DNA of 64,000 bases from Chrysemys picta bellii (Eukaryota). Where the stretch lies: assembly GCF_011386835.1 (NCBI RefSeq), contig NC_088810.1, positions 5,146,001 through 5,210,000 of the forward strand, in the 5' to 3' direction. The notes under the pieces are model-generated. The model had not been told where the DNA came from, did not search any database, and was given only the letters and a program-made list of their open reading frames with translations. Positions 30,640 through 41,084 of this stretch are shown here, in pieces (within the stretch, counting starts at the first letter, position 1; each line of letters begins with the position of its first letter). A program made the translations under genes and the position numbers.

Positions 30640-30910
30640 CCCAAATAGGCGTAGGTCCCGCCCACATCCCAATAGGCCCCTCCCCAGAGAACCATAGTCC
30701 CCTCCCATCCATGTCACCGCCCCCGGTCCCCTACGAAGCTCCGCCCTATCTCCTACAGCCTTTCTCCAGGCTCCGCCCCATCTCGCCACAAGCTCCGCCC
30801 TCCGCCCGTCTAGCCACGCCCCACCGCGTGGCGCTGATCGGTTTATTCCGCCCACGGAGCCGGGACCATGGAGGGGCCGAGCGGGGCCGCCCGGAGCGCG
30901 GGGTGAGGGG
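30640..30910 (+). promoter_or_regulatory. CpG-rich promoter and exon 1 of C19orf84
   Basis: Dense CpGs and repeated CCGCCC GC-boxes directly upstream of GGACCATGG (ATG at 30868). Confidence 0.65.
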
Positions 30911-33900
30911 CGGGGCGCTGCCCTCCTCCCCATAGACCCTCCCTTCCACCCCATAGACCCCCAGCCAGGGACCCCCCTTCCACGCCATAGACCCCCCCAG
31001 CCGCCCATGGGACCCCCAGCCAGGGAAACCCTCCTCTACAGAACCCCCCCTCCACCCCATAGACCCCCCCCAGGAACCCCCTCCACCCCATAGATCCCCC
31101 CTCCACCCCATAGACCTCCCCCAGGGACCCCCCTCCACCCCATAGACCCCCCCATAGACCTCCCCCAGGGACCCCCCTCCACTCCATACATCCCCCTTCC
31201 ACCCCATAGACCCCCCCAGCCAGGGACCCCCCTTCCATGCCATAGACCCCCCCCCAGCCACCCATGGGAGCCCCAGCCAAGGAAACCCTCCTCTACAGAA
31301 CCCCCCTCCACCCCATAGACCCCCCCCATAGACCTCCCCCAGGGACCCCCCTCCACCCCATAGATCCCCCTTCCACCCCATAGAACCCCCACAGCCAGGG
31401 ACCCCCCTTCCACCCCATAGATCCCCCATCTACCCCATAGACCTCCCCCAGGGACCCCCGCCCCATAGAACCCCAGCCAGGGACCCCCCCTCCACCCCAT
31501 AGCTTCCCTCCACCCCATAGACCACCCAGGCACCCCCCTCCGCCCCATAGAACCCCAGCCAGGGATCTCCCCTCCACCCCATAGCTTCCCTCCACCCCAT
31601 AGACCCCCCCAGGGACCCCCTTCCGCCCCATAGAACCCCCCAGCCACCCATGGGACCCCCAGCCAGCGAAACCCTCCCCCATGGAACCCCCCCTCCACCC
31701 CATAGACCCCCCCTTAGACCTCCCCAGGCACCGCCTCCGCCCCATAGAACCCCAGCCAGGGACTCCCCCCTCCACCCCATAGACCTCCCCCAGGGACACC
31801 CCTCCACCCCATAGACCCCCCATAGACCTCCCCCAGGGACCCCCCTCCACCCCATAGATCCCCCTTCCACCCCCATAGATCCCCCCCAGCCAGGGACCCC
31901 CCTTCCATGCTATAGACACCCCCCCAGCCACCCATGGGAGCCCCAGCCAGGGAAACCCTCCCCCATGGAACCCCCCCTCCACCCCATAGACCTCCCTCAG
32001 GGACCCCCCTCCACCCCATAGATCCCCCTTCCACCCCATAGACCCCCACAGCCAGGGACCCCCCCTCCACCCCATAGATTCCCTCCACCCCATAGACCAC
32101 CCAGGCACCCCCCTCCGCCCCATAGAACCCCAGCCAGGGGTCTCCCCTCCACCCCATAGCTTCCCTCCACCCCATAGACCCCCCCAGGGACCCCCTTCTG
32201 CCCCATAGAACCCCCCAGCCACCCATGGGACCCCCAGCCAGCGAAACCCTCCCCCATGGAACCCCCCCTCCACCCCATAGACCCCCCCTTAGACCTCCCC
32301 CAGGCACCCCCTCCACCCCATAGAACCCCAGCCAGGGACTCCCCCCTCCACCCCATAGCTTCTCTCCACCCTATAGACCCCCTCAGGGAACCCCCTCCAC
32401 CCCATAGCTCCCCCCAGCCACCCATGGGACCCCCAGCCAGCGAAACCCTCCCCCACTGAACCCCTTCTCCACCCCATAGACCCCCCCCTTAGACCTCCCC
32501 CAGGGACCCCCTCCACCCCATAGAACCCCAGCCAGGGACCCCCCTTCGACCCCATAGCTTCCCTCCATCCCATAGACCTCCTCAGGGAACCCCTGCCACC
32601 CCATAGACCTCCCCCAGGGACCTCCCTCCACCCCATAGACCCCCCCCAGCTGCCCATGGGACCCCCAGCCAGGGAAACCCTCCCCCATGGAATCCCCCTC
32701 CACCCCATAGACCTCCCCCAGAGACTCCATCCATGGGAACTCCCATTCCAGCCCCATAGATCCCCCCAACCAGAGACCTCCATGCCTCCCATCCGACCCC
32801 CTCCACCCCATAGAACCCCAGCCAGGGACCCCCCTTCGACCCCATAGCTTCCCTCCACCCCATAGACCCCCTCAGGGAACCCCCGCCATGCCATAGACCT
32901 CCCCCAGGGACCCACCTCCACCCCATAGACCTCCCCCAGAGACTCCATCCATGGGAACCCCCATTCCAGCCCCATAGATCCCCCCAACCAGAGACCTCCA
33001 TGCCTCCCATCCGACCCCATGTCCAGCCCCTTAACCCCACAACCAGGGCATCCTCCCCGACATTAGAACTCTCTTCCAGCTTAAGAGTCTCCCTTCCTCC
33101 AGCCCCACCCAGCCAGGGAACCCCCTCCCACAAACACCCCCACACACAGACCACCGCCCCTCCCTCCATAGAATTCCCATCTCCTGTTGGAGAGGGGAGG
33201 ATCTCTCTGTCTCTGACCCCCTTTTCCGTTCCCCCCGCAGCTCCCCCAGGCCCAGCGAGCCCAGCCCCACAGAGCCGCCCGCCTCGGACCAGACCGCGCT
33301 GGAGAAGATGCCCGTTGTGCCCTCCTGCCCTACCCCCGGCTCTGCCACACCTTGGATCCTGGGTCGCCCCTCGGCCGGGGCCCTGTCCTCCATCACCGTG
33401 CCCGTCCGGCTGGACGCCCTCGCCTACCTGCTCAACAGCGCCCTCTTGGGGGCCTACTCGGCCTTGCCACAGACGCCCCTCTCCGGCAGCCACGGGGCAT
33501 TGGCCATGGGTCACGGCGGGCCTCCCCAACATGCACTGGGCTGCGGGTGTCAGCCACGCTACTGCTGTGGCCCCCAGCCGGCTCGGGTGGGGTGCTGTGG
33601 GTCTGGCGCCGTGGGGCAGAGCAGCGCCGGCTGCTCCCAAGAGATACCTGGGGGCCGCAGCGATTGGCAGGACTCCTCTGCGAGATGGGACCGGCGAGGG
33701 TCTCCGTCGCTGAGTGGCTGGGGGGAGAACCGGCGAGCAAGGGGGCAGAAAGATTTCAGTCGGCCCTGGGGGTGGCAGAGGCCGTGGGGCGAGGCGGACT
33801 CCGCCCCACGCAAGGCGGGACAGTGGGGGCCGGGGAGAGCCCAGAGCTCAGATTATGCGGCCAGGAAGCGGAACCAAGATGGCTGCCCGTGGGACGCCCC

Positions 33901-34435
33901 TGGGGCAAAGAGATGGTCTAGTGGGGGGGTGAAGAGATGGGGGGAAACTGAGGCAGCCAAAGCCACCAGGGAAGATTGGGAGGCAGATTACGGGGGATCC
34001 AGCGCCCGAGGGAGCGTCTTGGAGAAAGCCCGGTCTTCCCAGCCCAGCCTCCCAGCTTCCCAGGAAGGAGAAGACTGGGAAAAGGAGTATGAGGAGTCCC
34101 CCAAATCGGCGCCGGGGGTTCCCCCTCTTCCACAGGTGGCTTTGAAGGTTCAACCGGCCTCCCTCCAGGAGAGGACAACGCCCCGCCCAGCTTGCAAGGA
34201 CGGCAGCGTCTCCAGCTATCTCCAGAACCTCTTTGCCGACCTGCGCGGGGGGTCCAGCACCGCCTCAGAGCCGCGCCGGGGGAGACAGCCCCCTGGAGGT
34301 GCCGCCGAACGTGGGACACGGCTCCCGGAAGGAGGAGGAGGCCCGAGTGGCCAGGGGTCTGCCAAGCTCGGCGATTTCACGGCCCAGCGCGTTGACCTCC
34401 CCAGAGCCGCCGCAGAGAACGAGGACAGTGCGTGA
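30868..34435 (+). CDS. C19orf84: C19orf84 orthologue (piRNA-pathway/SPOCD1-associated factor in mammals), 409 aa, 2 exons
   Basis: Exon 1 30868-30902 (MEGPSGAARSAG, donor GG|GTGAG, phase 2) joins exon 2 33241-34435 in frame. Block SSITVPVRLDALAYLLNSALLGAY (33386-33457) matches human [24 protein letters not shown] as recalled (17/24 identical). Cys cluster, GW motifs and EDWExxY are also shared. Lies directly upstream of LIM2 on the same strand, as in human. Confidence 0.85.
30920..33000. repeat. C-rich minisatellite filling most of C19orf84 intron 1
   Basis: CCCCATAGACC...CAGCCAGGGACCCCCC units over about 2.1 kb; source of the Gly/Trp-rich reverse pseudo-ORFs. Confidence 0.9.
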
Positions 34436-34569
34436 GCCCTGCCGAAGCTGGGGCCTCATGGTTCTCCCATCCAACCGGCCACCCGTTGCTGACTCCACCA
34501 GCCCACCGGGCTCGGCCGTTCAGCCAAGGGTTGGTTTGTTGTTAACTCCGTTCTTTTTCATCCTCCAGC

Positions 34570-35090
34570 ATCTACCCATCCTCCTCCATTCCTAACCTGT
34601 CCCAACAAGTCTTCTACCCATGATCCTCCCTTCCTAGCCCTCTTCCCATCATCCTCCATTCCTAGCCTTCTACCCATCATCCTCCATTCCTAACCTGCCC
34701 CAACAAATCTTCTACCCATGATCCTCCCTTCCTAGCCTTCTACCCATCATCCTCCATTCCTAGCCTTCTACCCATCATCCTCCATTCCTAACCTGCCCCA
34801 ACAAGTCTTCTACCCATGATCCTCCCTTCCTAGCCCTCTACTCATCATTCTCCATTTCTAGCCGTCTACCCATGATCCTCCATTCCTAACTTGCCCTAAC
34901 AAGTTTTCTACCCATGATCCTCCTTTCCTAGCCCTCTACCCATGATCGTGGACCCCAATCAAGCTTTCTATCCATGATCCTCCCTTCCTAGCCCTCTACC
35001 CATCATCCTCCATTCCTAGCCCTCTACCTGTGACCCTCCACCCCAAACAAGCCTTTTCCCCAGGATCCTCCATTCCCAACCTCTTGTCTT
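34570..35090. repeat. ~27-bp tandem repeat downstream of the C19orf84 stop (probable 3'UTR)
   Basis: TTCTACCCAT(C/G)ATCCTCCATTCCTAGCC units; first downstream AATAAA at about 35872. Confidence 0.8.
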
Positions 35091-38781: not shown

Positions 38782-41084
38782 ATGTACAGCTTCATGGCAG
38801 GGGGTCTTTTCTGCGCCTCGGTCGGGAACATCCTGCTGGTGGTTTGCACAGCCACTGACTACTGGGTGCAGTACCGGCTCCAGGGAGCCTTGGCCCACCA
38901 AGGCCTCTGGCGGTACTGTCTGGCGGGCAAGTGCTACATGCAGATGGAGAACATTGGTAAGGACCACTAGGGGGCACTGTGCTGCAGGGAGCGGGGTGGG
39001 GGCTCTCCCCTGGCAGGCAGGGCTGGCGCAGATGCACTAGGGGGCGCTGTGCTGCAGGGAGCGGGGTGGCGACTCTCCCCTGGCAGTCAGGGCTGGCCCC
39101 AATGCCCCCAGGGCGGCGCTAGGGGCACTCCCAGAGGCCCTAGCATGTTCTCCAAGAGGCATTCGGCTTCCCTAAATCCTCCCTCAAGCTGAGATTTTCA
39201 TTTGCTTCCCTCCTAAATTGCACTGAATTGTGAATTAACCAGCCACTGTGCCCTGCCCCAGAGGTGGCTGCATCTCAGCACCAGGCGAACCAGCCCCGCA
39301 TGGTGTTATGTGTGGCTGTTCCACAGCTGCTCTGCCCCAGAGGTGGCTGCATCTCCGCAGTGGGCGAACCATCCCTGTGCAGTGTTATGTGTGGCTGTTA
39401 CCCAGCTCTCCCGCCCCAGAGGCAGCTGCATGTCTGTGCCAGGAGAGCCAGCCCCATGCAGCATTACATGTGGCTGTTCCCCTGCTTCCCTGCCCAGAGG
39501 TGGCTGCATCTGTGCGCCGGGCGAGCCGTCCCCTTCTAAACAGGAGCGGTTTTGAGTGTTTTCTCCCCGCTGCTCTAGCCTACTGGAATGCCACCCGGGC
39601 CTTCATGATCCTCTCTGCCCTGTCCTGCTTCGCTGGCATCATCACGGGGATCTTGTCCTTTGCCCACCGATCCACCTTCGAGAAATTCAACCGGTCGTTC
39701 GCTGCTGGGATAATGTTCTTCGTCTCCAGTAAGTGTCTGCCCACTGCCGCGGGGACCCCAGCTGGCCACCAAGACACAAGGAGGAGAGCAGGGTCTAGTG
39801 GTTAGAGCGGGGGGGCGGGGGGCTGGGAGCCAGGACACTTGGGTTCTTTTCCCAGCTCTGGGAGGAGAGTGGGGTCTAGTGTTTAGAGACGGGGGGCAGT
39901 GGGAGCCAGGACGCCTGGGTTCTCGCCCGGTTCTGGGAGGGGCGTGTGGTGTAGTTACACTTCCCAGGCAGGAGGGCCTGAGAATCAGGACGCCTGAATT
40001 CTCTCCCCAGCTCTGGGAGGGGAGTGGGGTCTAGTGGTTACAGTGGCGGGGGAGGGGCTGGGAGCCAGGACTCCTGGGTTCTATCCCAGCTCTGGGAGGG
40101 GCGCGGGGTGCAGTAGTTAGAGCAGGGAGGGGCTGGGAGCCAGGACTCCTGGGTTCTATCCCAGCTCTGGAGGGGCACAGGGTGCAGTGGTTAGAGCAGG
40201 GGGAGCAGGGAGGAGCTAGCAGCCAGGACTCCTGGGTTCTATCCCAGCTCTGGGAGGGGAATGGGGTGTAGTGTTTAGAGACGGGGGGCAGTGGGAGCCA
40301 GGACGCCTGGGTTCTCGCCCGGCTCTGGGAGGGGCGCGTGGCGTAGTTACACTTCCCAGGCATGTAGCGGTTTCTCTGGCCTCTTGTCCTGCCATCGGTC
40401 TCTCTGCCCCACCTCCTCCAGCGCTCTTCGTCCTGCTCGCCATGGCTGTCTACACCGGAGTCACCGTCAACTTCCTGGGCAAGCGGTTCGGGGACTGGCG
40501 CTTCTCCTGGTCTTACATCCTGGGCTGGGTTGCCCTGCTCATGACCTTCTTCGCAGGTACAGGCCCTTCCCCTCTAGGGGGCGCCAGCTCTCATCCAGCC
40601 CCGGGGCGGTGGGGGCAGTGTGGGGGCTGGCAATGGGGCTTTCCCTCTGGGGGTGGCAATAGGGCACCTTTCTCCTCATCCAATTCCTTGTTTCACACTC
40701 CCTGTCCAGGAATGCCCCGGCTCTGACCAGTAACCCCCCTCCCAGAGCTGGGGAGAGAACCCAGGAGTCCTGGCTCCCAGCCCCCGTGCTCTAACCATTA
40801 GACCCCACTCCCCCTCCAGAGAACCCAAGAGTCCTGGCTCCCAGCCACCCCCCGCTCTAATCACTAGACCCCCACTCCCCTCCCAGAGCTGGGGAGAGAA
40901 TTCAGGCGTCCTGACTCTCCTGCTCTAACCACTAGACCCCATTCCCTTCCTGGAGCCAGGGAGAGAACCCTGGAGTCCTGACCCCTCAGTGCTGTTAAAC
41001 AGCCCCTCTCTCCCCCTCACAGGGATATTTTACATGTGCGCGTATCGGATGCACGGATGCCAGCGCGTGGCTGAGACGCGTTAA
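38782..41084 (+). CDS. LIM2: Lens intrinsic membrane protein 2 (MP19/MP20), 173 aa
   Basis: Exons 38782-38956 (175), 39579-39728 (150), 40422-40556 (135), 41023-41084 (62). MYSFMAGGLFCA...GLWRYCL...AYWNATRAFMILS...FGDWRFSWSYILGW...GIFYMCAYRM. Intact. Candidate non-coding exon donor at 38233; AATAAA at 41762. Confidence 0.95.

Follow-up and report, generated by a model that had tools for sequence, protein, structure and literature searches.

What does a long, tryptophan-rich stretch do in a protein whose mammalian counterpart is only half its size? The question is raised by C19orf84 of the painted turtle, Chrysemys picta bellii, in a window of 64,000 nucleotides (nt) on the forward strand of contig NC_088810.1 (assembly GCF_011386835.1), to which all coordinates below refer. 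Mouse C19ORF84 binds SPOCD1 directly, the association of SPOCD1 with DNMT3L needs C19ORF84, and the protein is required for DNA methylation directed by PIWI-interacting RNA (piRNA), a role known for mouse only (PMC7618654, PMC13757620). In nuclear foci it is found together with SPOCD1 and SPIN1 (PMC7618654). An initial annotation of the window had described an expanded array of WG and GW dipeptides and a duplicated EDWExxY motif in the turtle protein, and had suggested direct contact with Argonaute proteins. Our analysis points to a different history: the turtle protein appears to be an ancestral long form of C19orf84, almost wholly disordered, and this long form is likely to act as a multivalent docking strip of short motifs. 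We regard this as the best-supported reading because the protein is disordered and its motifs stand in a fixed order.

Identity and motif order of the painted-turtle protein

The stretch in question encodes the middle of painted-turtle C19orf84. The coding exons, the intron and the protein features mapped below lie on the plus (+) strand. Exon 1 (30868..30902) starts at the ATG and holds 11 codons and 2 bases, giving MEGPSGAARSA and the first two bases of the G12 codon; an exact match to the database peptide begins at 30868, a GT donor follows at 30903, and the splice joint is seen in RNA contigs. Exon 2 (33241..34435, including the stop codon) encodes residues 12-409 and covers all flagged features. 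At 100% identity, its open reading frame matches P0001 (409 residues; RefSeq 'C19orf84 homolog' of Chrysemys picta bellii) from residue 13 to residue 409, and the gene assignment of the initial annotation is thereby borne out. Analyses of the protein were run on exon 2 and on this database entry.

The gene is transcribed and spliced. Contigs from runs X1, X2 and X4 skip the intron (30903..33240; 2338 nt, GT..AG, with the acceptor AG ending at 33240), where depth is 0. Because the contigs skip exactly this GT..AG interval, with zero depth inside it, the public runs are RNA. RNA contigs run through exon 2 without a break or an internal joint, and a 1504-nt contig of a related species reaches from 33240 to 34674. 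The mature transcript includes the Trp tract, the two EDWE motifs and the tail.

The first element of the protein is the N-terminal family motif TVPVRLDALAYLLNSALLGAY (33395..33460), with TVP[IV]RLDAL.YLL at residues 64-84. It holds a predicted helix (residues 69-85) and gives the sole alignment to the Pfam family PF17703; P66, R68, L69, D70, L72, L75 and A79 are invariant in an alignment of 27 vertebrate sequences that includes mammals. A Cys-rich stretch follows (33542..33634), in which the seven-Cys cluster reported upstream of the tract was found at residues 113-143. C115 is invariant in 27/27 sequences of the same alignment, and Cys columns coincide between clades at 19 times the chance level.

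The basic, Trp-rich, disordered tract (33659..33946) was recovered in the exon frame as first described, with 96 residues, 10 Trp, five WG and two GW, and has a net charge of +8. Four sub-motifs within it are conserved in cross-clade alignments: SGWGENRRARGQKDFSRP (33713-33766), QWGPGRAQ (33821-33844), DYAARKRNQDGCPWD (33851-33895) and KRWSSGG (33908-33928). Two acidic motifs of the EDWExxY type come next, both confirmed. EDWEADY (33971..33991) is present in sharks, amphibians, squamates and turtles, and its D257, W258 and Y262 are invariant in all 27 vertebrate sequences. EDWEKEY (34070..34090) aligns with the C-terminal EDWExEY of mammals and has counterparts in sharks, salamanders, a caecilian and Sceloporus, together with a degenerate form, SDWEKES, in Ascaphus.

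After EDWEKEY we counted 114 residues, where about 115 had been estimated. They include a predicted C-terminal amphipathic helix, SVSSYLQNLFADL (34205..34243; AlphaFold helix 334-344), whose pattern F..YL.NL[FY]SD is conserved in squamates and turtles, recognisable in frog and caecilian, and absent from mammals. They end in a poorly conserved disordered tail (34244..34432), with 44-74% identity among turtles and a low predicted local distance difference test score (pLDDT). AlphaFold2, given the 27-sequence alignment, predicted only the helices at residues 69-85 (pLDDT ~91) and 334-344 (pLDDT ~76); the Trp tract, and most of the protein outside the two helices, had pLDDT <50. No solved structure was found for the C19orf84 family.

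The Trp count of the tract is above the expectation from nucleotide composition, because shuffled sequences rarely reach 10. Mononucleotide shuffles of the 288 nt gave a mean of 2.35 Trp (2/5000 reached 10), and codon-position-preserving shuffles a mean of 4.65 (28/5000). A recent tandem expansion of the tract was rejected, as no DNA tandem repeat lies inside it; the lone tandem repeat within 33241-34435 is a trivial 15-mer at 33245-33276. Two residues of the protein are particular to the reference. W190 (33773-75), which forms one of the two GW dipeptides, is a reference allele (GGG to TGG); the position is Gly in run X2 (another run under the same species label), in run X5 (a close relative) and in every turtle orthologue except two Mauremys. 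C330 (34193) is also reference-specific, with Ser in 4/4 runs and in most other turtles.

Membership of the C19orf84 family is secure although the Pfam score is low, because a diverse N-terminal profile retrieves named mammalian proteins. PF17703 scored 30.9 bits with the exon and 27.6 bits with the full protein, in each case through the N helix only and below its gathering threshold of 40 bits. The model is mammal-centred: an armadillo protein scored 215.9 bits, compared to 17-30 bits for non-mammalian homologues. Profile A4, built from the N-terminal regions of turtles, squamates, amphibians and sharks, retrieved ten named mammalian C19orf84 proteins (E 1.5e-9 to 1.1e-4). Such diversity was needed: word-index searches with the turtle protein returned turtles only, and a turtle-only profile missed the mammals. 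EDW[ED].EY forms the C-terminus of nine named mammalian proteins and two unnamed transcriptome sequences, 11 of the 12 retrieved; the exception is the Myotis model.

Homologues from sharks to mammals

Full-length homologues outside turtles and mammals emerged from a profile search across 1.84 billion representative proteins, and all of them are unnamed 'uncharacterized' entries. They come from squamates (Phrynocephalus, Paroedura, Liasis/Python, Sceloporus and Podarcis; 434-504 residues; P0026-P0031), the tailed frog Ascaphus (688 residues; P0032), the caecilian Rhinatrema (644 residues; P0036 and P0037), the salamanders Ambystoma (931 residues) and Pleurodeles (992 residues), and the catshark Scyliorhinus (~726 residues; P0035 and P0052). 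The same motif order is common to these proteins: a TVP.RLDAL.YLLN helix, a Cys-rich stretch, a basic tract, and one or two [ED]DW[ED]..Y motifs. Their basic tract contains G[NS]WK, DF.RP, RKRN[QE][DE]..W, [KG]RWS.G and SWQQR. Squamates, frog and caecilian have a C-terminal F..[YF][LM]..[LF]..D helix, for which the signal in sharks and salamanders is weak or unclear. The shark protein can be aligned with that of axolotl over ~450 residues (E 4e-22). As the order from N helix to EDWExxY is common from sharks to turtles, it would predate tetrapods, and as the homologues include catsharks, the origin of the family is pushed back to jawed vertebrates.

Neither the expansion nor the duplication that had been read into the turtle protein survives this comparison. 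Tracts are longer in sharks (132-157 residues with 4-7 Trp, one sequence having <7), amphibians (166-186 residues, 7-10 Trp) and squamates (115-141 residues, 7-10 Trp) than in the five turtles compared (96-100 residues, 8-10 Trp), and mammals have a reduced form (31-66 residues, 3-5 Trp). The turtle tract is therefore denser rather than expanded: no other long form has a shorter one, and its number of Trp is typical. Two EDWExxY-type motifs are likewise found in sharks, salamanders, caecilian, one iguanian and turtles, the second copy ending in Cys in the caecilian and the iguanian. Start to start, the two motifs are 33 residues apart in catshark and turtle alike.

How does the mammalian protein differ? 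The genes are orthologous and lie next to LIM2, and the mammalian proteins (169-205 residues in named species), those of placental mammals included, keep the TVP.RLDAL.YLL helix, a short Cys cluster, three Trp motifs (GW..RRR, WGPGRA and GW.GGSGAG) and one C-terminal EDWExEY. The mammalian form described in the initial annotation, of about 186 residues with a few GW and a single terminal EDWETEY, matches the non-human mammalian homologues that were retrieved. The mammalian Trp motifs match turtle W172 (GW..RR.RG), W207 (WGPGRA) and W237/245 (GW.GGSGAG), with mammalian WGPGRAE and GW.GGSGAG corresponding to turtle QWGPGRAQ and RWSSGG..GSGAG, respectively. In contrast, the turtle protein is twice as long (409 residues), has 10 tract Trp compared to 3-5, and adds a second EDWExxY, the C-terminal amphipathic helix and a 60-residue tail, with a sub-threshold Pfam score; the mammalian proteins are without the C-terminal helix and tail.

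Since the long form is found in sharks, amphibians and lizards, it would have been lost in mammals, not gained in turtles. On the simplest history suggested by these sequences, early jawed vertebrates already had the long form and mammals later reduced it. The profile search found no teleost, bird or crocodilian homologue, and it also missed the mammals, so that absence from these three groups is weakly supported. The family has been published as 'first observed in axolotl'; the long-form motif anatomy, its ancestral status, and the homologues in squamates, caecilian, tailed frog and catsharks appear to be new.

Gene neighbourhood, turtle orthologues and a paralogue

Four exons of LIM2 (38782..41081, +), located by tblastn with lizard LIM2 proteins, lie 4.3 kb downstream of C19orf84 on the same strand, so that the neighbourhood is conserved; human C19orf84 presumably adjoins LIM2 as well. 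Gene models in lizards fuse the C19orf84 homologue with LIM2, and the Podarcis muralis model P0047 (726 residues) is such a read-through fusion. The catshark homologue adjoins CLPTM1, whose human orthologue we take to be on 19q13.

Several further features were noted at the turtle locus and in related gene models. The intron is almost wholly a C-rich minisatellite, with arrays at 30921-32943, units around CCCTCCACCCCATAGA and periods of 12-490 nt, and it yields long spurious minus-strand open reading frames. A 28/98-nt tandem repeat occupies 34571-35076, in the region of the 3' untranslated region (UTR), and its RNA contigs are fragmented and map to several places. At 34441, 6 nt past the stop codon, 34 extra nt are present in 4/4 RNA runs under two species labels. 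The reference is therefore missing 34 nt of 3' UTR, through either a deletion allele or an assembly slip; the coding sequence is unaffected. In a contig of run X5, the exon-2 acceptor at 33240 is preceded by another upstream sequence. This sequence had no match in the window even when 3 mismatches were allowed, and may be an alternative first exon or species-specific. Two short database models, P0007 (247 residues, sea turtle) and P0039 (237 residues, wall lizard), omit the Cys-rich and Trp regions. No splice joint matching either was seen in the painted-turtle RNA contigs, nor one for P0007 in any of the four RNA runs, and these models may be annotation artefacts or rare isoforms.

The whole architecture is present in 13 turtle orthologues from both suborders. 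W50 and motif 1 (EDWE..Y) are invariant in all of them, and motif 2 is EDWEKEY in nearly all, Dermochelys having EDWEKAY. Tract Trp number 7-10 per species among the 13, with the painted turtle highest, and nearly every gain or loss is a swap of W with R or G. A core of W172, W207, W229 and W237, together with the two EDWE Trp, is fixed or nearly so. The tract is 77-81% identical across the turtle suborders, like the rest of the protein, while the last 60 residues are clearly less conserved. Compared to the close relative, 11 synonymous and 8 non-synonymous differences give a ratio of non-synonymous to synonymous substitution rates of roughly 0.2; this rough estimate suggests purifying selection on turtle C19orf84.

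Turtles also carry a second C19orf84 gene. The paralogue LOC122174587 (431 residues, intron-containing, 64% identity) lies on another chromosome (Chrysemys picta CM062334.1, ~6.13 Mb), between a PGLYRP-like gene and CCDC61. A squamate-rooted tree groups the paralogues of Chrysemys, Platysternon, Mauremys and Gopherus in a single clade (99/97), which falls outside all turtle orthologues (86/88). Those of Mauremys and Gopherus are long-branched and have damaged motifs (EDCE, truncations).

Conservation of the tract and candidate functions

The initial annotation proposed to ask whether the tract Trp are conserved while the spacers between them drift; Trp columns agree between clades above chance, but not more than those of other residues. 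We masked every Trp in 21 sequences of five clades before aligning them, and scored a clade column wherever at least half of the clade had Trp. Trp columns coincided between clades 7 times, compared to 1.8 expected (19/5000 permutations), or 15 times compared to 4.9 when a one-column tolerance was allowed (3/5000). W172 is conserved in at least 90% of the 27 vertebrate sequences, and W172, W229 and W237 are common to turtles and distant clades, including the AT-richer sharks and amphibians. Trp positions are thus conserved in part among reptiles and well beyond them, because Trp columns coincide above chance and W172 reaches at least 90%. By the same statistic, R, K, Q, P, F and C were enriched to a similar or greater degree. 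Unique conservation of Trp was therefore rejected, other tract residues being equally enriched and Trp being invariant among turtles no more often than the tract overall. The alignments point to a tract conserved as a whole, as a disordered region, and not to conserved Trp in drifting spacers.

What might such a region do? We think it likely that the ancestral long form is a docking strip, in which the N helix, the Cys-rich stretch, the basic [G/S/R]-W tract, the two EDWExxY motifs ~33 residues apart and the C-terminal amphipathic helix would each hold one partner of a SPOCD1-DNMT3L/DNMT3-PIWIL4 assembly. The N helix and EDWExxY would be the best candidates for the essential SPOCD1/DNMT3L contacts, because they are kept in every lineage. 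The Trp tract would probably add avidity or extra partners, and it and the C-terminal helix would be accessory contacts, reduced or lost in mammals. The sequence and RNA data show the identity of the gene, its transcription and splicing, the motif order, its deep conservation and the predicted disorder; the docking role of the motifs and the pairing of each with a partner are inferred.

Some observations weigh against this docking strip. First, every non-mammalian homologue scores under the PF17703 gathering threshold. Second, transcription of C19orf84 was seen in public RNA runs whose tissue is coded. Third, only 4/10 painted-turtle Trp are invariant in turtles, compared to 46/96 tract residues (eight representative lineages). 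Fourth, the cross-clade ratio for Trp, 3.8, is similar to those for R, Q and P. Fifth, in global pairwise alignments of the turtle tract with ten lineages, Trp-Trp counts were not above those of shuffled controls. The reason is that the aligner pairs Trp anyway, and the test was replaced by the Trp-masked alignment; in the pairwise alignments only the total score was significant (z 1.3-5.8, and at least 3.5 in 8/10).

Might Trp and Arg act collectively instead? The tract would then be an Arg/Gly/aromatic 'sticker' for RNA or chromatin binding or for condensates, or a site of arginine methylation read by Tudor-type domains. All lineages have a net basic tract containing 8-27% Gly, Trp swaps freely with Arg among turtles, and RGRG runs flank the mammalian Trp. 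The amphibian homologues, with 4-7 RG and 1-3 RGG, include an RGRGGG box beside RWSGG and SWQQR, and in this respect, as in their basic, Gly/Arg-rich disorder with aromatics, they resemble RGG/RG-box proteins. The nuclear foci that mouse C19ORF84 shares with SPOCD1 and SPIN1 (PMC7618654) would also suit this explanation. However, turtle tracts have few RG (1-4) and no RGG (2 RG and 0 RGG in the painted turtle, which is not the repeat of an RGG/RG box), and squamates have 0-2 RGG. Furthermore, the best-conserved parts of the tract are the non-RG motifs DF.RP and RKRNQ[DE]. We consider a collective role of this kind unlikely.

It is more doubtful that the Trp density of turtles is largely a by-product of CGG and GGG mutating to TGG in a disordered tract that is rich in GC and in Arg/Gly and weakly constrained, with only a few Trp selected. 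The near-restriction of turtle Trp changes to W/R or W/G exchanges is what this would produce, and so are the W190 reference allele, R372W in a relative, and the small number of invariant Trp among turtles; the tract holds four CGG Arg and ten GGG Gly codons. However, the 10 Trp exceed what codon-position-preserving shuffles give, and the core Trp are fixed or nearly fixed in turtles, with W172, W229 and W237 extending to AT-richer sharks and amphibians. The tract is also as well conserved across turtle suborders as the rest of the protein.

The remaining explanation is the one first proposed, in which the [G/S]-W array would be an Argonaute hook that binds PIWIL4 or AGO directly, so that C19orf84 bridges PIWI to the methylation machinery. 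The tract has the multiple GW/WG in disorder that typify hook proteins (10 W, 5 WG and 2 GW per 96 residues, pLDDT <50), and its Trp stand mostly after G, S or R at a spacing of 4-30 residues. As in GW182/TNRC6 (and Tas3, NRPE1 and SPT5L), which have many G/S-flanked Trp in a disordered tract, Trp number is roughly kept while positions turn over: most long-form lineages have a steady 7-10, and tract length varies about two-fold. GTSF1/Asterix offers a second parallel: this piRNA cofactor uses conserved Trp of a central, non-globular region (W98, W107 and W112) to bind PIWI proteins (PMC9385479). The lineages with homologues (sharks, amphibians, squamates, turtles and mammals) also resemble the published distribution of PIWIL4 (PMC7618676), although the lack of hits in teleosts and birds carries little weight, as the same search missed mammals.

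Against a hook, there is no match to Ago_hook or a GW182-type family, PF17703 being the sole Pfam family at E up to 1 in one search and up to 0.1 in another, and the tract is strongly basic (+6 to +13, except for +1 in a single shark sequence). Several Trp occupy fixed contexts (GW.[DE]N, RKRNQ[DE]..W and RWS.G) and look like specific docking motifs rather than interchangeable hooks. The presumed partner would be of the PIWI clade, in which the three Trp pockets are reported to be highly variable and not conserved (PMC12477606), and SPOCD1, not C19ORF84, is described as the MIWI2 contact (PMC7618654, PMC13757620). GTSF1 differs in its CHHC zinc fingers and its mere three, closely spaced Trp; homology with C19orf84 was undetected, and the resemblance is speculation about function. 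It is thus quite improbable that the array acts as an Argonaute hook. Equally slim is the prospect that the long-form array is a genuine PIWI-binding platform, GTSF1-like or GW-like, with C19orf84 bridging PIWIL4 to DNA methylation and the gene dating, together with PIWIL4, to the base of the jawed vertebrates. If true, this would place piRNA-directed DNA methylation in sharks, before the published first observation in axolotl.

The docking strip that we favour bears on a protein that is an essential, mechanistically opaque adaptor in mammalian piRNA-directed DNA methylation. If the history proposed here is correct, the 409-residue turtle protein retains an ancestral architecture that sharks also have and that is reduced to a minimal remnant in mammals. 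The comparison provides ranked conserved motifs for mutation, namely the N helix, the three core Trp motifs, EDWExxY and the C-terminal helix lost in mammals, and the Argonaute-hook idea itself is directly testable with a handful of Trp-to-Ala mutants. The catshark homologues suggest, in addition, that the family is older than its published first appearance in axolotl.

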